Positions 4,992-63,120 of a stretch of 64,000 nt of DNA are shown here, piece by piece. The notes below the pieces were generated by a model. The model was not told the DNA's origin and did no database searches. It was given only the letters and a program-made list of their open reading frames with translations. Within the stretch, counting starts at the first letter, position 1. Every line of letters starts with the position of its first letter. The position numbers and the translations under genes were made by a program. Location of the stretch: sequence record ON529860.1. One strand, 5' to 3'.

Positions 4992-5294
4992 TTAGGCGCC
5001 GAGCGGTTCGTCTTCTCGGCGCAGCAGGTGTTGAATGCGGTTGGCGGCGTCGACCTCGTTGATCGAGCCCGACGCCAGCAGTTCATCCATGCGGTCGGCG
5101 ATCAGGCCCTCTTCGTCGAGGGTCAGGACCGCGAGGAGGTAGAGACCCGCCAGCGAGACGTGCTTGCGGATGTCCGGCCGTTCAGGGAAGTTGACGATCA
5201 GTTCCACGTCGGCTTCTTCGTCGTCGCCGACGTCAAAGAGGTCCAGCGTGTATTGCCGCAGCGCGAACAGATCGTCGGTGGGGGTAGAGGACAT
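4992..5294 (-). CDS. Hypothetical acidic protein
   Basis: ATG at 5294 (MSSTPTDDL); operon packing. Confidence 0.65.
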   Translation of the reverse strand: MSSTPTDDLFALRQYTLDLFDVGDDEEADVELIVNFPERPDIRKHVSLAGLYLLAVLTLDEEGLIADRMDELLASGSINEVDAANRIQHLLRREDEPLGA

Positions 5295-5376
5295 GACCGG
5301 CGGTCTCCAGAACGTCATTGCCGTGATTGTTGTCAATCATTGTCATGATGGCTGGCGCCGGTCAACGGTGTTTCCC

Positions 5377-5646
5377 CTAAGAAACCCTGTCGGTTGAGGG
5401 AGTTGACCCGAAGCGCGCAGGAGGGTGCGGCAGCGGAGTCCACCATTCGTGATAGCCCGGCCAACCGCCCAGATTGACCACGGCGGTGAAGTCGCCGATC
5501 GACAGTTCGTAGCCCCGGCCCAGGCACAGGGGCGAACCGACATAGGGCGCCTCGGTGACCGGGTTGGTCCACCACAGAACGTCGCCCATGTCCTCGTGCC
5601 ACTCGTCGATATGTCGGGCGTCAGGGGACGGCGGGCGCGCGGTCAT
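5377..5646 (-). CDS. Hypothetical Trp/Pro-rich protein
   Basis: 3' part of track ORF 5377..6249 (MTARPPSPDARHIDEWHEDMGDVLWW); its start overlaps the upstream stop. Confidence 0.65.
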   Translation of the reverse strand: MTARPPSPDARHIDEWHEDMGDVLWWTNPVTEAPYVGSPLCLGRGYELSIGDFTAVVNLGGWPGYHEWWTPLPHPPARFGSTPSTDRVS

Positions 5647-5864
5647 GCCCATTCTCCCTGATGCAGGCGGCTGTCGCCGTATTGGCGCTCCAGCGGGGCC
5701 TTGAAAACGACGTCCTGGGGGCCGGCGACCTTCTTGGCGTAGGGCGGGATGAAGAGCCCGGACATGCCGGGCTCGTCGATCCAATCCTGCCACTCCGACC
5801 GCGCCGCCTGCTCGACCAGATACCACTGATCGCGCACCTGGGAGAGGAAGTAGTAGCCTCGCAT
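5643..5864 (-). CDS. Hypothetical protein
   Basis: MRGYYFLSQVRDQW; the start overlaps the thyX stop. Confidence 0.6.
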   Translation of the reverse strand: MRGYYFLSQVRDQWYLVEQAARSEWQDWIDEPGMSGLFIPPYAKKVAGPQDVVFKAPLERQYGDSRLHQGEWA

Positions 5865-6799
5865 CACAGGCACTCGTTCGGCACGAACTTGCGGAACTGG
5901 GCGAAGCCCTTGAGATTGCCCTGCACCCAGTCAGGCTCGACGTCGAAGGCGATGCGGGCCTGGTGCTCCAGCGGCGAGGCGTGCAACGGCGTGGCGCCGG
6001 CCAGGCGCAGATAGAGGTTGAGATCAGTGTCGATCTCGGGACGGGCGCCGTCGTGCTTGGAATAGCTGACGCGGCAGCAGCGGGCGGTGGAGATCGCCAG
6101 CAGCAGAGCATCGACCGGCGACACGCGTTCGAACGGTCCGCCCAGGTTCTTGACGCCGCACAGGGTGTCGATGATCTGGTAGGCGAGCGGATGACGATTG
6201 AGTTCGAGGACCACCCGCTTGGCGTCGGCGATGTCGTCTTCGGTGACATAGGGCAGATGCCAGTCGCCTTCGCGCAGCAGGCGCGGTTCGGCGTCCTGGC
6301 GCGCCTGCTTGATCGCCTGGGCCAGATGCATGATCTCGTCCTGGGCGTCGGTGTGGTCGCGCAGGGCGTCGAAGTTCGACCAGGTGGTCGAGGTGGCGAC
6401 CACCTCGATATAGCCGAACCACTCCAGCGGCCGGTTGACCCACTGCTTGTGCACGTTCAGGCCGTCCTTGGCCGCCAGCAGACGGGTCTTCTCCAGGACG
6501 AAGTCCGCCATCTCTCGCCAGATCGCCTCGGCCTCGGCCTGCTTGTCCGGCGACAGGAAGTCCCCCGGCTGCATGCCGGGCTGATTGACGCGGAACTGCG
6601 GGACGTAGATGTCGGCGTCGCGGATCGTCAGCGAGGCGTGAGGAATGGCGCGGCTCGACGAAGCGTTGCGGCTGAAGACGCGGTGCGTCATGAAGTCGGC
6701 GTGCACCATGCGCGGGTAGCGCAGTTGCAGGGTGTCGATGCGCTCGCCGTCCTCGGTGATCGAGGAGGCGATGGATTTAGCGGTGATTTGAGGAATCAT
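5864..6799 (-). CDS. thyX: FAD-dependent thymidylate synthase
   Basis: FMTHRVFSRNASSSRAIP signature, plus STARCCRVSY and HASPLEHQA. The ATG is at 6799. Confidence 0.92.
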   Translation of the reverse strand: MIPQITAKSIASSITEDGERIDTLQLRYPRMVHADFMTHRVFSRNASSSRAIPHASLTIRDADIYVPQFRVNQPGMQPGDFLSPDKQAEAEAIWREMADFVLEKTRLLAAKDGLNVHKQWVNRPLEWFGYIEVVATSTTWSNFDALRDHTDAQDEIMHLAQAIKQARQDAEPRLLREGDWHLPYVTEDDIADAKRVVLELNRHPLAYQIIDTLCGVKNLGGPFERVSPVDALLLAISTARCCRVSYSKHDGARPEIDTDLNLYLRLAGATPLHASPLEHQARIAFDVEPDWVQGNLKGFAQFRKFVPNECL

Positions 6800-7038
6800 T
6801 CGGAAGGCTTCCAGTCCTTGGACCAGCTTTGCTTGATCGCGGCGGTGAAGAGTTGAACGGGGCGGCTGTAGAAGTCGGCGAAGGCCTCCCAGGCGTCGCC
6901 CAGGGCGCTGGGAAGGACCCAAAGGACGGTCGGGGCCATGCCGACCACCATCACCGGCACGGCGATGAAGATCACCGCCAGGCGTCGCAGGAAGGTGGAG
7001 CGGATGCCGCCGATCAGGCCGTTGGGTCCGGGAGCCAT
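6796..7038 (-). CDS. Small membrane protein
   Basis: One hydrophobic segment; overlaps both neighbours. Confidence 0.6.
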   Translation of the reverse strand: MAPGPNGLIGGIRSTFLRRLAVIFIAVPVMVVGMAPTVLWVLPSALGDAWEAFADFYSRPVQLFTAAIKQSWSKDWKPSE

Positions 7039-20822: not shown

Positions 20823-21182
20823 CTAACGCCCGAAGCGGAAAAAGCGGCGCAGGGGGGATTCCGTCTCGCGCTTGTATTGCTCGGCGTAGTCGGCCTTGCG
20901 CTTCTTGGTCTCTCCGACCGTGTCATGGCAATCCGCCCAGGCGCCGTGAAGATCACGGTCGTAGGCGGCCTTGTCTTCGTCCAGGCGCGGCTGACCCGGC
21001 GCGGGGCGCGCGGGCACGACCGGCTCGTCCCGGCACTCGGTGATCGAGTCCGGGTAGAGGCTGTCAGGGGACAACAACACCGTCGGGCTGCTTGCGCAGG
21101 CCGTCAGCAGCAGGCTGGTCGCCAGCAGGAGCGCCGCCAGTCGGGCGGGCTTGCGCTTCCGCGCGTCGGTCGAGGGCTTCAT
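20823..21182 (-). CDS. Outer-membrane spanin (Rz1-like lipoprotein)
   Basis: Basic N-region, hydrophobic core, lipobox LTAC and a Pro-rich mature part; overlaps the i-spanin in another frame. The ATG is at 21182. Confidence 0.8.
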   Translation of the reverse strand: MKPSTDARKRKPARLAALLLATSLLLTACASSPTVLLSPDSLYPDSITECRDEPVVPARPAPGQPRLDEDKAAYDRDLHGAWADCHDTVGETKKRKADYAEQYKRETESPLRRFFRFGR

Positions 21183-21597
21183 CTTGGGCTCCGTGATAAT
21201 CGGGACGTTCGGCGGCGATGCCGTCGAGCGCGGCGTCGTGCTTGCGGCCCTGGGGGGCCTGTTCAATCCGCTCGGTGATGCGGTCGTTCTGGGAGCGGCG
21301 GACGTCGCGTTGCGCGGCGCGACGCGCTTGCGACTTCTGGGCGTCCTGATCCGCCTGGGCCTGGCGGGCGGCGCCGGCGATCTGCGCCTCAAGGGCGTCC
21401 GCGCGCTTCTCCGAGTGTGCGAAGGCCAGGACCGCCAGCACCAGACCGAGAATGAACCAGGTCCGGATGTCGGAGGCGATCTTGATGACGAAGGCGGGTC
21501 CGACCGTGAACCACAATGCGACCACGGCGGCGCAGACCGCCGCGATCGTCCACAGGGTGGCGGGGTTCAGCAGAAGGGCCAGAAGGATGGAGAACAT
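21064..21597 (-). CDS. Inner-membrane spanin (Rz-like)
   Basis: N-terminal TM segments followed by an Ala/Gln/Arg-rich coiled coil; lies in the lysis cassette. Confidence 0.75.
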   Translation of the reverse strand: MFSILLALLLNPATLWTIAAVCAAVVALWFTVGPAFVIKIASDIRTWFILGLVLAVLAFAHSEKRADALEAQIAGAARQAQADQDAQKSQARRAAQRDVRRSQNDRITERIEQAPQGRKHDAALDGIAAERPDYHGAQDEALDRRAEAQARPTGGAPAGDQPAADGLRKQPDGVVVP

Positions 21598-22058
21598 CAG
21601 CGCTTGAACGTCACAGGATGGATGCCCTGACGATACCCCGAGCCGTTATAGGTCAGGTTCTGGCGACGCATCCGGGGATTGAAGGAGATGTGGACCCACC
21701 AGGAGCCGTTGGGCTTGCGCTCGTGGATCAACTGGTCGTAGTCCAGTTCCGAGGCGGCGATCTCGCGACAGATCGCCAGCGGATCACCAAAGCCGGGGCA
21801 GGTGAAGTCGACCGCCCAGCCCAGGGCGTGGTCGGAGTTGGGCACGCCGCCGACGGCGCGGTTGACGGCCGGATTGCGGTAGGCCGAGTTGACCCGGATG
21901 GCGTTGTCACCCAGCACCCAGCGCACCTGCTCCATCCGCTGAGCGGTCTGGCGCATGTTCTCCAGGTGGGCTGGGGTCGGCATGTTGTCGTTGCGCAGAC
22001 GAGCGGCGGTGTCTGACCGCACAAACTCTGCAAGCGTGAAATGGTCAGACAGACGCAT
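21597..22058 (-). CDS. Peptidase M15A family Zn peptidoglycan peptidase
   Basis: LSDHFTLAEF, NSAYR-x3-VNRAVGG, SDH-x3-WAVD and WVHISF. Confidence 0.9.
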   Translation of the reverse strand: MRLSDHFTLAEFVRSDTAARLRNDNMPTPAHLENMRQTAQRMEQVRWVLGDNAIRVNSAYRNPAVNRAVGGVPNSDHALGWAVDFTCPGFGDPLAICREIAASELDYDQLIHERKPNGSWWVHISFNPRMRRQNLTYNGSGYRQGIHPVTFKR

Positions 22059-22579
22059 CAGTCCGTCACCCCCGTGTCCGAGGCCTTGTCGTCATCGACA
22101 GAGGGCATGGGGCGTCCGCCCCGGAAATCATTGCGGCCGCCGAACCCGCCGTAGCCGCCCCCGAAGCCGCCACCGCTGTAATCGTCGTCTTTCTTGCCGC
22201 CGCCGAAGCCGTAGTCGACGTTGCGCGAGGTGGACGGATCGACGTCAGGATCATCGGCGGTGGTGACCAGGGTCAGGCCGGCGCCGCCCGGCCCCTTCAG
22301 CGACAGGCCCTTGATCGTGCCCAGCATCGAGATGATGACCAGGGCGAACAGGCCCAGGAAGATGTAGCCGTAGTTGATCAGGCCGGTGATGATCTGGGTC
22401 TGGAGGCCGTTGTATTCGGCCGTGTAGGTCACGGCGAACCAGACCAGCACGATGATCATGCCGACGAACAGCGGGAACAGCGACATGCCCGACAGGATGA
22501 TCGACACGCGCTGGAGATGGTCCGGGCGATCGCACAGGACGTCCATGGTGTCGCGCATCCAGCGGAAGAAGCGGCTCAT
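22058..22579 (-). CDS. Probable holin (2 TM with a hydrophilic C-tail)
   Basis: Two hydrophobic helices; lies between the endolysin and the spanins. The ATG is at 22579. Confidence 0.65.
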   Translation of the reverse strand: MSRFFRWMRDTMDVLCDRPDHLQRVSIILSGMSLFPLFVGMIIVLVWFAVTYTAEYNGLQTQIITGLINYGYIFLGLFALVIISMLGTIKGLSLKGPGGAGLTLVTTADDPDVDPSTSRNVDYGFGGGKKDDDYSGGGFGGGYGGFGGRNDFRGGRPMPSVDDDKASDTGVTD

Positions 22580-22626
22580 GTTGTGTCGCAGCCGCAGCGG
22601 CGACGGGGTCGTCGGCCAGCGGGGCA

Positions 22627-23235
22627 TTAGCGGTAGGACCAGGCGGTCTGGAGCGACTGGGCGGCGGGGTGGCCGCCGTAAACCATCAGTTCGGCCAGGC
22701 GGCGGCGATAGAGCCCCAGCGCCCACTTGCCGTTGGCGTTGGACCAACGGGCGAAGGCGATCTGGATGTTGACAGGTTCAGCCTTGGCCTTGGACTGCGC
22801 CGCCAGGCCCGACATGGAGATGTTGCCGACCTTGCGCGCGCCCTGGGCGTGCAGGCGCGCCACGGCGGACGAGCGGAAGCCGGCGGTGCCGATGTTGAAG
22901 CACATGGAGACCATGGCGTCGAATTCGCCCTGGTAGGTGCGGGCGTCCGCGATGCGGTTGACCTCGGCGACGTAGCGCTTGAGGTCGTCGGTCAGCAGGG
23001 CGTCGGCCTCGGCGACGGTGATGCGCTGCTTGCCGAACATCCGCTGCATGGCTTCGCGGGTCAGTTGGTCGGCGCGGGCGCGGCCGAAGATGTCGTAGTC
23101 GATGATCTGGCCCGACGGGGTCGTCAGGGCGTGGCCCCAGCCGATCGTGGAGACGTGGGCCGAGCAGTAGTAAGGCTCGGCCTCGAACTGCTCGGTGGAC
23201 TGAATCAGCTTCAGCCCTTCCGAGGAAATTTGCAT
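22627..23235 (-). CDS. Endolysin, GH24 phage lysozyme
   Basis: ISSEGLKLIQSTE, E-x8-C-x5-T triad, TIGWGH, FDAMVSMCFNIG and GLYRRRLAE. Confidence 0.9.
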   Translation of the reverse strand: MQISSEGLKLIQSTEQFEAEPYYCSAHVSTIGWGHALTTPSGQIIDYDIFGRARADQLTREAMQRMFGKQRITVAEADALLTDDLKRYVAEVNRIADARTYQGEFDAMVSMCFNIGTAGFRSSAVARLHAQGARKVGNISMSGLAAQSKAKAEPVNIQIAFARWSNANGKWALGLYRRRLAELMVYGGHPAAQSLQTAWSYR

Positions 23236-23271
23236 TGTAGTGGAGACACGGGCTGTCAAAAAGTCTGGCAG

Positions 23272-23300
23272 ATTGTGCCAGACTTATTGACATTCGTCAA
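23272..23300 (-). promoter_or_regulatory. Probable lysis-cassette promoter
   Basis: TTGACG-17 nt-CACAAT, within an AT-richer intergenic region containing the dyad TTGAC-ATTC-GTCAA. Confidence 0.5.
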
Positions 23301-23334: not shown

Positions 23335-24456
23335 TCAGACGTCGGGCGGCATCAAAACGATGCCCGAAGGGACCGGCGAGAGGGGATTGAACCCCGCTTG
23401 AGACCATGCCCGATGCGGGATTTTGACGCCTTCCTCCACCCGCGCGCGATCCAGCGCCTGGGTGAAGCGCGGCAGGGTCAGGCCGGTGCCGTAGGACCAG
23501 ATGTGATCCCCGTGCCGTCGCAGGCCGTATGAGCCGATCTCAATGCCCGCCAACAGCAGGTCGCGGCCCTCGTCGGTCTTCTCCTGGGACAGGGCGGCCT
23601 TGGGCGCGCCAAGCCGCAGCGCCAGTTCATAGGCGTCAGCCAGCATCGCCTTCCAGCCCGTGTCGTCGGCGTAGGTGTTGTCGTAGAGTTCCACCTTCAT
23701 GAAGGTCGGGAAATGCAGGTCGTCCTCGGCGTCGCCCAGGCGGAAACAGGGCGTGCAGGCGACCATGCGGCCGTGGCCGATGGCGCCGTCTTTGTCCAGA
23801 TGAAGGAAGGATTGCTCAGACGATCCGACCAGGTAGCCCAAGCCGTCCACGCGCGCCGCGAACGCCGGGTTGGGGCAGGTGATGTCGATGGTGTCCTTGG
23901 ACACCGCCCAAGGCGTCTCGACGTAGCGGTAGCCCTCCCTTTCGTAGAAGGCCACGGCGGCGCCCAGCAGGGCGTAGTCGATGCGCGGCATCGGGGGCAG
24001 GTCCTTGTGGACCGGCGCGACCGGGTAGCGCGCTTTCATCTGGCTGATCGCGTCGCGAATCGCGCCCACCCAACGCGACTGCTTGGGCGATCCCGTCTCG
24101 GCGTGGTCGATCGCCTCCAGCGGCTGGTCGTTCAGATGCGCCAGAGGCACGCTCAGGCCGTAGCGGGTATGAATTTGCGTGCGGACATGGTCCGCCCACT
24201 CCACGTCGCTCGCCCGATAGAAACGCCAGTCGGGCGGCGGCGGCGGGGTCGGCCGACGGGCTTGTTCGGCCGCGATCAGGACGCGCAGCCGCGCCTCCAG
24301 GGACGGCCCGGAAGACGACCCGAACCACGGCGAAGGCCGCGCCATCATGTCTCCCAGCGACACCGTGGGGTGGTACTCCGAGGTGAAGACCGCCTCCTCG
24401 AACCGCTCCAGGTCCAGATCGATCACATAGGTCGAGCGCCAGTCAGCGTCGTCCAT
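23335..24456 (-). CDS. Protein with a stand-alone class II aminoacyl-tRNA synthetase-like catalytic core (Lys/Asp/Asn type) and an unknown N-domain
   Basis: Motif 1 (FYEREGYRYVETP), YLVGSSEQSF, motif 2 (TPCFR...HFPTFMKVE), EIGSYG and motif 3 (YGTGLTLPRF). No OB anticodon-binding domain is recognisable. Confidence 0.75.
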   Translation of the reverse strand: MDDADWRSTYVIDLDLERFEEAVFTSEYHPTVSLGDMMARPSPWFGSSSGPSLEARLRVLIAAEQARRPTPPPPPDWRFYRASDVEWADHVRTQIHTRYGLSVPLAHLNDQPLEAIDHAETGSPKQSRWVGAIRDAISQMKARYPVAPVHKDLPPMPRIDYALLGAAVAFYEREGYRYVETPWAVSKDTIDITCPNPAFAARVDGLGYLVGSSEQSFLHLDKDGAIGHGRMVACTPCFRLGDAEDDLHFPTFMKVELYDNTYADDTGWKAMLADAYELALRLGAPKAALSQEKTDEGRDLLLAGIEIGSYGLRRHGDHIWSYGTGLTLPRFTQALDRARVEEGVKIPHRAWSQAGFNPLSPVPSGIVLMPPDV

Positions 24457-24919
24457 TGAGGAAGGCCCTTTCGGTGATGGCGGACATGGTCTCCAGGTCG
24501 GCCAGAGTCAGATTATGCTTATGCAGGTAGGCCTTGACCGCGCCCATGAGGTCCGCCAGTTCGACCAGGCCCATGATGACCGAGCCCTGCTGGACCGCGT
24601 CGGCGAACTCGGCCGCCTCTTCGATGATCTTGGAGGGCTCGCCGAGCACGCCCTTGGCGATCGGGGTCAGGTGGTAGCCCGGTTTAACTTCCTCAGGCGC
24701 CTCGAATGGCCTCATCACCTGGGCGAACTCGTGGGCGGTCATTCCTCCGTAGTTCAGGCCGTCAAGGGCTGCGCTGGCATAGCGATCATATTGGTCTTTG
24801 TTCGGCCCTTCACGCGACGTATCGCCGAACTCGCGCAGGCTCTCGTAGTCATGGCCGTCCCGGCGCGCGAGATGCGTCACGATGGCTGTGAACTGGCGTT
24901 GGTAGAGGTCGTCGAGCAT
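24443..24919 (-). CDS. MazG/PRA-PH-like all-alpha NTP pyrophosphohydrolase domain (C-terminal)
   Basis: KIIEEAAEFADA...VELADLMGAV fits the EExxE...ExxD pattern. Confidence 0.7.
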   Translation of the reverse strand: MLDDLYQRQFTAIVTHLARRDGHDYESLREFGDTSREGPNKDQYDRYASAALDGLNYGGMTAHEFAQVMRPFEAPEEVKPGYHLTPIAKGVLGEPSKIIEEAAEFADAVQQGSVIMGLVELADLMGAVKAYLHKHNLTLADLETMSAITERAFLNGRR

Positions 24920-24950
24920 CCGCCACGGTTACGCCAGCGGCCCGCAGGTG

Positions 24951-25580
24951 TCAAGCAACCTGACGATGATCGTCGTGAATCCTGTCATCCGCCAGCAGGT
25001 CCGCCAAGGGGCGCTCCGGGATATAGGTCAGCGACGAGGGCGTCGCCCGCACGATCTCGATTCCCCTGGTCTGGAGCGCGGCGATCAGGGGCGGATAGAG
25101 GGGACCAAAGGCCTTGGTGTAGTTGGACTCCTTGGTCGGCACGGGATGACCGGCGTGCCAGTGCGACGCCGTCCCGCCCTGGAACCCCATGTCGTAGCCC
25201 AGGAGGACGATCCGGGCGACGCCCAGGTGCAGGCACAGGTTCAGCGCCATATAGCCGCTGTCGTGTCCGGCGACATGGTCGGGATTGGTCGAAAGCGCCG
25301 GGCCGCCGGCCTCGAAGCGCATGTCGCGGTAGAGGCGTTCGACGCGCTGGTCCACGGTCGGGGACGGGGTGATAATGCGCCCGGAGAAATGCGCCGGCAC
25401 GCGATCGCGATGCCAGTCCCACCAGCGGGCGTCGGCGAAGAACAGGATGTCGGGCTCGGGGACGATCTGATAGGCGTTGTTGAGCGCGATCGTGCGCCGG
25501 TCGCGCAGGCCGCTCAGGTCCATGCCCTTCAACGAAGGGCCGCCGCCAATGATGTATGCCGTCTCGCCGCGCCAGTGCAT
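24951..25580 (-). CDS. Maf/MptE-like (sialyltransferase-fold, DUF115-type) protein
   Basis: IIGGGPSL, ALNNAY, FFAD, SGYMALNL-x3-LGV-x2-IVLLGYDM and HWH. Confidence 0.65.
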   Translation of the reverse strand: MHWRGETAYIIGGGPSLKGMDLSGLRDRRTIALNNAYQIVPEPDILFFADARWWDWHRDRVPAHFSGRIITPSPTVDQRVERLYRDMRFEAGGPALSTNPDHVAGHDSGYMALNLCLHLGVARIVLLGYDMGFQGGTASHWHAGHPVPTKESNYTKAFGPLYPPLIAALQTRGIEIVRATPSSLTYIPERPLADLLADDRIHDDHRQVA

Positions 25581-62648: not shown

Positions 62649-62732
62649 TGGCTCCTATGAGAGGACTCGAACCTCTAAGTCTTGCGACGGTCGATTAACA
62701 GTCGACTGCGTTTACCATTCCGCCACATAGGA
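62649..62732 (-). tRNA. tRNA-Asn(GUU) with a long variable arm
   Basis: UCCUAUG/CAUAGGA-G-CCA, anticodon arm GUCGA-CUGUUAA-UCGAC, and variable stem GUC-GCAA-GAC. Confidence 0.9.
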
Positions 62733-62757
62733 ACAAACTGAATACTGATATTTTACC

Positions 62758-62831
62758 TGGTTCTGGCTCTAGGAATCGAACCTAAATCTCGGAGACCAAA
62801 ACTCCGCGTGATACCGTTACACTAAGCCAGA
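62758..62831 (-). tRNA. tRNA-Gln(UUG)
   Basis: UCUGGCU/AGCCAGA, anticodon arm CGGAG-UUUUGGU-CUCCG, CCA. Confidence 0.88.
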
Positions 62832-62842
62832 TCAGGAAAACT

Positions 62843-62920
62843 TGGTAGGAGGTACTGGATTCGAACCAGTGAAATGTCGGTATGTGAAACCGATGCCTTG
62901 GGCCGCTTGGCGAACCTCCC
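62843..62920 (-). tRNA. tRNA-Val(CAC)
   Basis: GGGAGGU/ACCUCCU-A-CCA and anticodon arm UCGGU-UUCACAU-ACCGA; the body is Gln-like. Confidence 0.8.
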
Positions 62921-62964
62921 ATGCAAGAGCAGCGTATCTCCACCGCTCAGGGACAAAGTAAAGT

Positions 62965-63041
62965 TGGTCCTAGCACCAGGATTTGAACCTGGGACCGAGC
63001 GGTTATCGACCGCGCGCTCTACCAAACTGAGCTATGCTAGG
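62965..63041 (-). tRNA. tRNA-Ile(GAU)
   Basis: CCUAGCA/UGCUAGG-A-CCA; anticodon loop UCGAUAA has C33 in place of U33. Confidence 0.85.
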
Positions 63042-63045
63042 GCTG

Positions 63046-63120
63046 TGGTAGCGGATACAGGAATCGCACCTGTGCATGTCGGCGTGTCATACCGATGCCT
63101 TTCTACTTGGCTAATCCGCC
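63046..63120 (-). tRNA. tRNA-Val(GAC)
   Basis: GGCGGAU/AUCCGCU-A-CCA, anticodon loop AUGACAC, T-loop UGCGAUU. Confidence 0.8.

Follow-up and report, generated by a model that had tools for sequence, protein, structure and literature searches.

Two overlapping genes on the minus strand of a 64,000-nucleotide stretch of DNA (sequence record ON529860.1, the whole of which is called the window below) encode a small protein related to the MazG and HisE nucleoside triphosphate (NTP) pyrophosphohydrolases and, downstream of it, a ligase related to class II aminoacyl-tRNA synthetases (aaRSs). The region of 1.6 kb was 100 % identical to Brevundimonas phage vB_BpoS-Papperlapapp (ON529860.1, 356.9 kb, Dolichocephalovirinae), for which GenBank labels both open reading frames (ORFs) as hypothetical proteins (PAPPERLAPAPP_05530/05520). 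An initial annotation made from the sequence had described two overlapping genes for proteins of 158 and 373 amino acids (aa), and both were recovered exactly as described (Table 1). The start codon ATG of the aaRS-like gene lies inside the end of the MazG-like gene, within ...ATGGACGACGCTGA, and this overlap of 14 nt (24443-24456) suggests, as far as sequence can, a translational coupling of both genes. In Marchewka, Gurke, CcrColossus, VEcB and AM101 the two genes are annotated with an overlap, too. Homologues of both proteins at 31-100 % identity occur in hundreds of phages, and the AlphaFold2 (AF2) models of ligase and small protein were confident with predicted local distance difference test (pLDDT) scores of 84 and 90, thus both ORFs are real genes.

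Pfam returned zero matches for the 373-aa ligase. Two relatives exceeded the cutoffs of class II core models (P0184 with 29.4 on tRNA-synt_2d, cutoff 19.8; P0156 with 27.4 on tRNA-synt_2, cutoff 25), and among the PHROGs residues 158-337 matched phrog_4806, 'histidyl tRNA synthetase', at 2e-40. The AF2 model was built from 20 homologues; its pLDDT of 84 overall was composed of a confident C-terminal two thirds with values above 90 for most of residues 160-342. Foldseek comparison of this model to the PDB had only class II aaRSs as top matches (PylRS, SerRS and PheRS at E values of 1e-8 to 3e-10), and AFDB Swiss-Prot yielded PheRS alpha and beta, SerRS and PylRS. The class II antiparallel beta-sheet fold, on which the initial annotation had made its proposal depend, was present and came back from both databases, and SerRS ranked first in the structure comparison. 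A single-sequence phmmer search of the 373-aa protein against PDB sequences gave chance matches only (encapsulated ferritin, E about 0.5). With the family profile SerRS was the sole significant match among PDB sequences (E 1.8e-5), and a broader family profile aligned to residues 186-326 of E. coli SerRS (27.6 bits). Comparison with real SerRS sequences revealed the shared signatures (S/T)AE, TPCFR, F-x-KVE, EI-x-S and G(S/T)GL-x-x-x-R; where the E. coli enzyme has EISS and GSGLAVGR, the query reads EIGS and GTGLTLPR. Within class II, the ligase is SerRS-like. All three class II motifs were located, as had been claimed, within about 190 aa: GYRYVETPWAV as motif 1 (P182), which makes up the dimer interface of class II enzymes, TPCFR as motif 2 (R239) and YGTGLxLPRF as motif 3 (R330), accompanied by the ATP/Mg element GIEIGS (E306, S309). 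They were invariant among 20 close relatives and kept to 96-100 % in 169 cluster representatives (clusters at 50 % identity or below). R239, R330, E306, S309 and the adenine-stacking F252 were conserved in 100 % of these representatives, P182 in 98 %, and K254, E256, D299, R313 and T324 in 96-100 %. Since the catalytic residues are conserved to this degree across the family, the protein has to be seen, on this pattern, as a predicted adenylate-forming enzyme under strong constraint, not as a decayed fragment. E256 and T324 presumably correspond to the residues with which SerRS binds the hydroxyl of serine, which hints at serine as the substrate but does not test it.

Beyond the closest relatives, only the last 80 residues of the small protein are conserved (phrog_6408). 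The N-terminal extension of 78 residues, with helices at 2-20, 41-57 and 62-72 in the AF2 model, is present only in P0022-P0029, the Brevundimonas-phage group; other relatives start at the core. Invariant in 17 sequences were PGYH, E100, E101, E104, D107, E120, D123 and ITERAFxNGRR; a lysine and a serine (K97, S96) are invariant as well, and the C-terminal GRR is conserved. The all-alpha NTP pyrophosphohydrolase motif that had been recognised initially, E101-x-x-E104...E120-x-x-D123, is thus invariant and the MazG/HisE fold assignment holds. This acidic metal motif (ExxE-15-ExxD) is also kept in a fused Microcystis-phage protein, and its residues are spaced like the four acidic metal ligands conserved in phage MazZ, E35, E38, E50 and E53 (PMC8342488). 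The Pfam scores were 20.0 bits for PRA-PH (cutoff 21.3, E 9e-4) and 12.6 for MazG (cutoff 22, E 0.18), and the hisE equivalog domain TIGR03188 reached 17.3 against a cutoff of 42.7. Because it falls below the Pfam and NCBIfam cutoffs, the small protein is a divergent member of the MazG/HisE superfamily, not HisE proper. Best Foldseek matches of its model were HisE (1yvw, 2a7w; probability 0.98-1.0), HisIE enzymes and MazG, and its language-model neighbours in the Atlas were viral clusters with PRA-PH, MazG or dATP/dGTP-PPHyd. A role as acyl or peptidyl carrier protein, after the model of ligases that join an amino acid to a carrier protein (aa:CP ligases), was rejected on account of the MazG/HisE fold and acidic motif; no carrier match was obtained.

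The two genes are very strongly linked across phages. An IMG/VR scan with the ligase alignment yielded 42 loci with GC contents of 26 to 66 % on contigs of up to 578 kb, and in 42/42 the MazG-like gene was located directly upstream on the same strand, frequently with an overlap. The same layout was present in two contigs of metagenome-assembled genomes (MAGs), in the phages VEcB and AM101, in Brevundimonas relatives and in a metagenome contig of 1.6 Mb. In all, it was seen in 48/48 loci and in two further contexts, 50/50 of the two-gene loci examined. A MazG-like gene without its aaRS-like partner did not occur in the loci examined. Two natural fusions join the partners in one protein: P0159 (L051 1001-1789) in a T4-like replication cluster with clamp loader and DnaB adjoining, and a 266-aa protein of Microcystis phage MaMV-DH01 (L055 4001-4801) that is named 'seryl-tRNA synthetase'. 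Both have the aaRS-like core N-terminal and the MazG-like core C-terminal, the reverse of the two-gene order. Among cultured phages, 276 records contained the core of the ligase by tblastn and 271 that of the MazG-like protein, with almost equal counts per genus (Escherichia 112/113, Acinetobacter 61/59, Caulobacter 13/13, Brevundimonas 7/7, Pectobacterium 10/10); most of the gap is due to the fused Microcystis proteins, and the two matches lay less than 1 kb apart in every record common to both lists. The pairwise divergences of both proteins were correlated with a Mantel r of 0.61 that 0 of 2000 permutations reached and to which shared genome history contributes. Chance adjacency is ruled out by 50/50 two-gene loci of equal layout and by the fusions. 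The co-occurrence in other phages, which the initial annotation had named as decisive, was upheld essentially without exception, and we have little doubt that the pair is a coupled unit of aaRS-like ligase and NTP pyrophosphohydrolase.

The pair is not peculiar to Papperlapapp, it is a widespread phage module. A deep search grouped the ligase family into 1,659 clusters at 50 % identity, 86-100 % viral where taxa were known, and about 0.5 % of the sequenced cultured phages carry the module, among them E. coli phages that are easy to work with (phi92, Justusliebigvirus, Phapecoctavirus) and T4-like phages of Acinetobacter. A pattern-limited scan of genome contigs found the two MAG contigs only, which is weak evidence of an absence from cells. 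The 1.6-Mb contig (L053, JGI 3300063431; 1,615,841 bp) has at 5100-6906 a cupin-MazG-like gene and an aaRS-like gene with a C-terminal extension of 120 aa. A size of 1.6 Mb far exceeds any known phage genome, and the contig may stem from a cell, as genome or prophage, or from faulty assembly. A universal third gene was sought by ORF clustering over the 42 loci and rejected: only two genes were universal, other neighbours were lineage-specific. PADLOC gave zero family matches for both proteins, the fusion, the cupin fusion and the VEcB homologues, thus no tie to known defence systems was obtained. Public sequencing runs with the locus are metagenomic contigs lacking strand information.

Table 1. 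Features of the gene pair, of its promoter class and of cupin-containing variants in other loci
Feature	Position	Strand	Basis
MazG/HisE-like protein gene, 158 aa, upstream partner	24443..24919	-	ORF; phrog_6408 1e-29; 16 homologues
Helical N-terminal extension of MazG-like protein, 78 residues	24686..24919	-	alignment and AF2
All-alpha NTP pyrophosphohydrolase core, 80 residues (79-158)	24446..24685	-	PGYH, E101xxE104...E120xxD123, C-terminal ITERAFxNGRR
Gene overlap, 14 nt, MazG-like stop / aaRS-like start	24443..24456	-	sequence
Class II aaRS-like (SerRS-like) ligase gene, 373 aa	23335..24456	-	ORF; phrog_4806 2e-40; AF2 pLDDT 84
Ligase N-terminal region (residues 1-150), two tandem degenerate alpha-CTD-like modules	24007..24456	-	Pfam matches in relatives, alignments
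Class II aaRS catalytic core (residues 155-342), motifs 1, 2 and 3 and ATP/Mg site	23431..23994	-	
Ligase C-terminal tail, 31 residues, closest relatives only	23338..23430	-	alignment columns 470-512 occupied only in P0001-P0005
Candidate promoter TTGACA-17-TAACCG	24926..24954	-	sequence; recurrent motif class on minus strand
TTGACA-N16/17-TA(n4) sites, first base	3600, 12661, 20804, 24954, 25641, 58032, 62432, 63557	-	motif count
Cupin-MazG-like fusions	L011 5163-5990, L016 5058-6005, L036 about 5061-5963, L053 5100-5930		
Stand-alone cupin between the two partners	L005 5403-5981		

Most ligases of the family are bare cores of 180-200 aa without an N-domain, and the stand-alone enzymes of about 190 aa are acidic (median isoelectric point 5.2, net charge about -7.5). 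The missing anticodon-binding domain noted initially was borne out, the SerRS coiled coil is lacking as well, and on the serS equivalog model TIGR00414 the ligase scored 12 bits against a cutoff of 301.65. The N-domain of the query had been regarded as unknown, but can be named. At the corresponding place, four of 20 relatives had a match to Pfam RNA_pol_A_CTD (best E 1.7e-9); query residues 76-150 align with the N-domain of P0016 (E 6e-7), a relative with RNA_pol_A_CTD, and residues 1-49 with that of the Kikimora-type P0007 (E 2e-14) as a second, truncated copy. According to these alignments the N-domain is a tandem degenerate helix-hairpin-helix (HhH) module resembling the C-terminal domain of the RNA polymerase alpha subunit (alpha-CTD). 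It is confined to Dolichocephalovirinae. The MazG-like protein varies at its N-terminus, too. A cupin is fused to it in four loci and is a separate gene between both partners in one (Table 1). This cupin of ~180 aa with an HDH...H pattern (phrog_4784), fused in some jumbo phages, was identified solely by a weak match to the PHROG 'cysteine dioxygenase' (phrog_4786, E 7e-5), and its profile had zero matches to PDB sequences. A tRNA-Cys gene lies few kb downstream in three of the four cupin-fusion loci. In a phage contig of 26 % GC (L044 5016-5960) the N-terminal domain is radical-SAM-like at a sub-cutoff Pfam match (E 1.8e-5).

The promoter hexamers claimed before the pair, TTGACA (24954-24949) and TAACCG (24931-24926) with a 17-nt spacer, are present. 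The -10-like TAACCG ends 6 nt before the MazG-like ATG, thus an mRNA starting here would be leaderless or nearly so. A generic sigma-70 consensus scan did not call the promoter site before the pair, since TAACCG is a poor TATAAT. On the minus strand of the window TTGACA was observed 13 times versus 6.2 expected, and eight of the 13 sites had the form TTGACA-N16-18-TA, mostly with spacer 17, versus a background of 4.2 % (p about 1e-8); their -10 variants comprise TAAACG, TAACCG, TATAGT, TAGAGT and others. The recurrent TTGACA-N17-TA probably marks a class of phage promoters whose -10 element tolerates GC, with the site before the pair as one of its members. In Marchewka this site persists although the spacer has three changes; Gurke and CcrColossus lack it, and their upstream gene abuts or overlaps. 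From these motifs it is plausible that the pair of Papperlapapp has its own promoter and a leaderless mRNA, but neither is a conserved feature of the module.

In the window every gene between the tail module and the lysis cassette, both included, is on the minus strand. Next to the pair on its upstream side, the gene at 24951-25580 (-) is MptE-like (PF01973, E 7e-5; phrog_4603 'alpha-2,3-sialyltransferase'). Its homologue in CcrColossus adjoins the tail gene and is followed by several glycosyltransferase and methyltransferase genes; compared with the window, several glycosyltransferase genes intervene in CcrColossus. The neighbourhood may be a virion or host-surface glycosylation cluster. A role of the pair in such a local glycosylation/tail cluster was rejected: the MptE-like neighbour is not conserved outside Dolichocephalovirinae, and CcrBL9 and CcrSC have the pair in tRNA arrays. 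In our reading, the pair has its place in the window by chance, as a mobile cassette of two genes that happened to insert there. Directly downstream follows the lysis cassette, 21064-23300 (-), with lysozyme (22627-23259), putative holin, M15 peptidase (21597-22058) and spanins, headed by a promoter-like site TTGACG-17-CACAAT with extended TG at 23300-23272. The phage tRNAs of the window, initially described as aberrant, were read by ARAGORN as ordinary tRNAs at 62649-63120 (-): Asn-GTT, Gln-TTG, Val-CAC, Ile-GAT and Val-GAC, of which tRNA-Asn is unusually long with 84 nt. Nothing was found that links these tRNAs at 62.6-63.1 kb to the pair. A tRNA with CTA anticodon (amber suppressor, ARAGORN 'tRNA-Pyl') is located at L035 12097-12172, about 5.5 kb from the module of a 243-kb phage contig. 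Two jumbo-phage contigs that are unrelated to each other encode a HODM_asu-like (DUF3445) protein directly downstream of the aaRS-like gene (L023 6644-7720, L038 6561-7535). In other genomes, genes of nucleotide metabolism recur beside the pair. A lineage of 12 loci has an SF1 helicase, a deoxynucleoside monophosphate (dNMP) kinase and a second MazG upstream and the large and small subunits of ribonucleotide reductase (RNR) downstream; the same helicase/kinase/MazG/RNR layout was described for Citromicrobium phage RXM (PMC8953757). Thymidylate synthase, IMPDH/GMP reductase, a PolB-type exonuclease and UvdE are near the pair in other loci, a helicase and several RNR genes in VEcB, and in Acinetobacter phage AM101 the pair lies in the nrdC/glutaredoxin region.

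The ligase is an acidic protein without any of the canonical tRNA-recognition domains and is coupled to a nucleotide hydrolase. For these reasons we favour, tentatively, a nucleotide-directed aminoacyl-transfer module with a non-canonical acceptor, for which we infer both activities as well as the amino acid, the nucleotide and the acceptor. The MazG/HisE-fold enzyme would convert a particular NTP to NMP and pyrophosphate. The SerRS-type ligase would combine a small, probably serine-like amino acid with ATP to an aminoacyl-AMP, and the aminoacyl group would pass to a non-canonical acceptor, most simply the nucleotide of the partner or a nucleotide 3' end. The pyrophosphohydrolase would supply or remove the nucleotide on which the ligase acts, and a nucleotide, or nucleotide 3' end, that is aminoacylated or modified with an amino acid would result. 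The chemistry of aaRSs acylates a nucleophile, PurZ adds an amine to a base. The precedent for the mechanism is the strictly co-conserved MazZ-PurZ, in which the MazG-like MazZ makes the substrate of the ligase, dGMP for PurZ (PMC8342488); by analogy, the pyrophosphohydrolase would feed the ligase. The recurring nucleotide-metabolism neighbours were counted as support for nucleotide-directed transfer. In the narrower form, that a tRNA-independent SerRS-derived enzyme aminoacylates a mononucleotide or a nucleotide 3' end generated by the fused or co-translated MazG-like partner, the proposal is unlikely.

Several observations speak against a nucleotide-directed transfer, and most of them count for its main rival, a minimal genuine SerRS-like aaRS that charges phage or host tRNAs or protects acylated 3' ends, with the MazG-like protein as accessory subunit or pool helper. 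The MazZ/PurZ analogy is architectural only, the chemistry being acylation and not amination, and in the window the pair lies between the tail/MptE-like genes and the lysis cassette, away from nucleotide-metabolism genes. Every carrier is a large phage that also encodes tRNAs. tRNA genes were found less than 6 kb from the pair in 14/32 loci; in the Caulobacter phages CcrBL9 (L012 4823-9376) and CcrSC (L014 5039-9601) the pair is inside a 16-gene tRNA array, and L034 and L042 have two tRNA-Gln genes directly upstream of the pair, with about 25-30 nt between their end and the MazG-like gene. An RNA ligase gene precedes the pair in one lineage. In VEcB the YqeY-like gp164 (L047 5586-6020; Pfam PF09424 above cutoff, PHROG name 'tRNA amidotransferase') follows directly after the pair, before an RNR block in which some genes are apparently split; as a general partner this protein was rejected, as a jackhmmer search found it only in VEcB. 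Some ligases, those of Dolichocephalovirinae, are fused to the nucleic-acid-binding alpha-CTD-like HhH domain. The tRNA proximity, the YqeY-like protein, the RNA ligase and the alpha-CTD-like domain are explained equally well or better by an RNA or tRNA acceptor, and the SerRS-like active site is fully conserved. Nevertheless we consider a tRNA-charging or tRNA-end-protecting enzyme rather unlikely. Coiled-coil arm and anticodon-binding domain are missing, most members are acidic cores of about 190 aa, the serS equivalog score is far below its cutoff, and no single tRNA isoacceptor recurs near the pair in the 32 loci. This reading leaves unexplained why an NTP pyrophosphohydrolase whose metal site is intact should be an obligate partner and in some cases be fused.

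A modification of DNA via the dNTP pool would have the NTP pyrophosphohydrolase turn a canonical dNTP into dNMP, to which the ligase adds an amino acid before re-phosphorylation and incorporation; model pathways are T4 gp56/gp42 (dCTPase-dCMP hydroxymethylase) and MazZ/PurZ. We know of no shared report of amino-acid-modified DNA for the very different phage groups that carry the module and of no precedent in DNA for an aaRS-made ester or amide on dNMP. That the pair neighbours genes for RNR, dNMP kinase, thymidylate synthase and replication is in line with this pathway, as are the optional cupin or radical-SAM-like domains, which could tailor a base, and the precedent of a MazG-like enzyme feeding a ligase (PMC8342488). 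With only two genes universal, a dedicated kinase or polymerase is not co-conserved, and the pathway is quite unlikely. The formation of dinucleoside polyphosphates or alarmones is a further route away from tRNA: aminoacyl-AMP and NTP would give Ap4N, the MazG-like protein would shape or limit the pool, and stress signalling or Np4N 5' capping of RNA could be affected. The known hydrolases of diadenosine tetraphosphate (Ap4A) are members of the Nudix and ApaH families and do not have the MazG fold, and a fused protein that both makes and hydrolyses nucleotides would seem to make sense only with different specificities. The loss of tRNA-binding domains fits here, since the class II aaRS LysU makes Ap4A when the tRNA acceptor is absent (PMC9437257), and the alpha-CTD-like fusion hints at a link to the transcription machinery; even so, we regard Ap4N formation as decidedly unlikely. 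A protein might be the acceptor, from host or phage or the small partner itself, in the style of EpmA on EF-P or of the aa:CP ligases. The arrangement of an aaRS core that lacks a tRNA domain, with a small helical protein beside it, does resemble aa:CP ligase/carrier and EpmA/EF-P (PMC9437257), and the invariant K97 and S96 and the conserved C-terminal GRR of the small protein would be at hand. The small partner shows the MazG/HisE fold, its metal site of four acids is intact and no carrier-protein match was obtained, a single invariant cysteine (C237) in the ligase leaves no aa:CP-type zinc site, and a fused substrate would be unusual, thus protein aminoacylation is very improbable. It is next to inconceivable that the database names are right, be it as a HisZ/HisRS and HisE pair or as a housekeeping MazG beside an unrelated synthetase fragment. 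PHROG and RefSeq do use the labels 'histidyl tRNA synthetase' and 'phosphoribosyl-ATP pyrophosphatase', and PRA-PH is the best Pfam family of the small protein. SerRS, not HisRS, tops the structure search and is the only class IIa family matched by the sequence profile, the hisE equivalog score stays below its cutoff, no HisG was among the neighbours scanned, and the catalytic arginines are kept, unlike in the non-catalytic HisZ (PMC9437257). A true HisZ/HisE or HisRS assignment is essentially excluded; the housekeeping version fails on the 50/50 layout and the fusions.

Both superfamilies are already known, and the genes are present in databases under borrowed, misleading names (HisRS/SerRS, PRA-PH/MazG). 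Papers take the misannotation as histidyl- or seryl-tRNA synthetase at face value (e.g. PMC8953757) and repeat annotations only; no functional study of the pair, or of a phage aaRS-like protein paired with MazG, and no account of the pairing or of an activity was found in the searchable literature. As new we regard a presumably tRNA-independent aaRS paralogue with an obligate NTP pyrophosphohydrolase partner. AsnA, EpmA, HisZ and the aa:CP ligases are aaRS paralogues that abandoned tRNA, each with an unexpected chemistry. The phage ligase is worth pursuit as one of the smallest class II cores (about 190 aa), almost purely viral and locked to an NTP pyrophosphohydrolase. If aminoacyl transfer to a nucleotide is true, the phage would make an aminoacyl-nucleotide, e.g., a mimic of the tRNA acceptor end, an aminoacyl-adenylate-like effector or the precursor of an amino-acid-decorated base, and would reprogramme with it host translation, nucleotide pools or immunity. 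Solving the chemistry would correct hundreds of annotations and could reveal a new nucleotide or tRNA-end modification, or a new route of host takeover or counter-defence.

Among known systems the catalytic domain of SerRS is closest to the ligase, with the best profile match, shared signatures and the motif 1 proline; SerRS has a core of about 250 aa, the phage core is reduced to about 190 aa by trimmed loops, is without the N-terminal coiled-coil arm for the variable arm of tRNA(Ser) and always has a MazG-like partner. The active site of aa:CP ligases is zinc-dependent with Cys/Glu/Cys ligands. These enzymes also combine a SerRS-related class II core, the loss of the tRNA-binding domain and a small helical partner encoded adjacently (PMC9437257). 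Their partner is a phosphopantetheinyl carrier protein and their distribution is cellular, whereas the phage partner has an NTP pyrophosphohydrolase fold, the distribution is viral and the zinc-ligand set is not conserved, only C237 being kept across the family. From AsnA/AS-A, EpmA/PoxA and HisZ the phage ligase differs in being SerRS-like, not AspRS-, LysRS- or HisRS-like, in its much smaller size and in its obligate NTP pyrophosphohydrolase partner, from HisZ also in its catalytic arginines. The general architecture is that of MazZ-PurZ, a phage NTP pyrophosphohydrolase of MazG-HisE fold with four acidic residues, co-conserved with and adjacent to an ATP-using ligase (PMC8342488), and as in MazZ-1 the MazG-like protein gains N-terminal fusions, here cysteine dioxygenase (CDO)-like cupin and radical-SAM-like domains (PMC8342488). 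The phage ligase has a class II aaRS fold and is not a PurA homologue, a DatZ-like third gene is lacking, and the expected chemistry would be acylation instead of base amination. With HisE and MazG the small protein shares the fold, the ExxE...ExxD metal motif and the size of about 80-90 aa; it differs from both by its scores below the family cutoffs and by an N-terminal PGYH and a C-terminal ITERAFxNGRR of its own.

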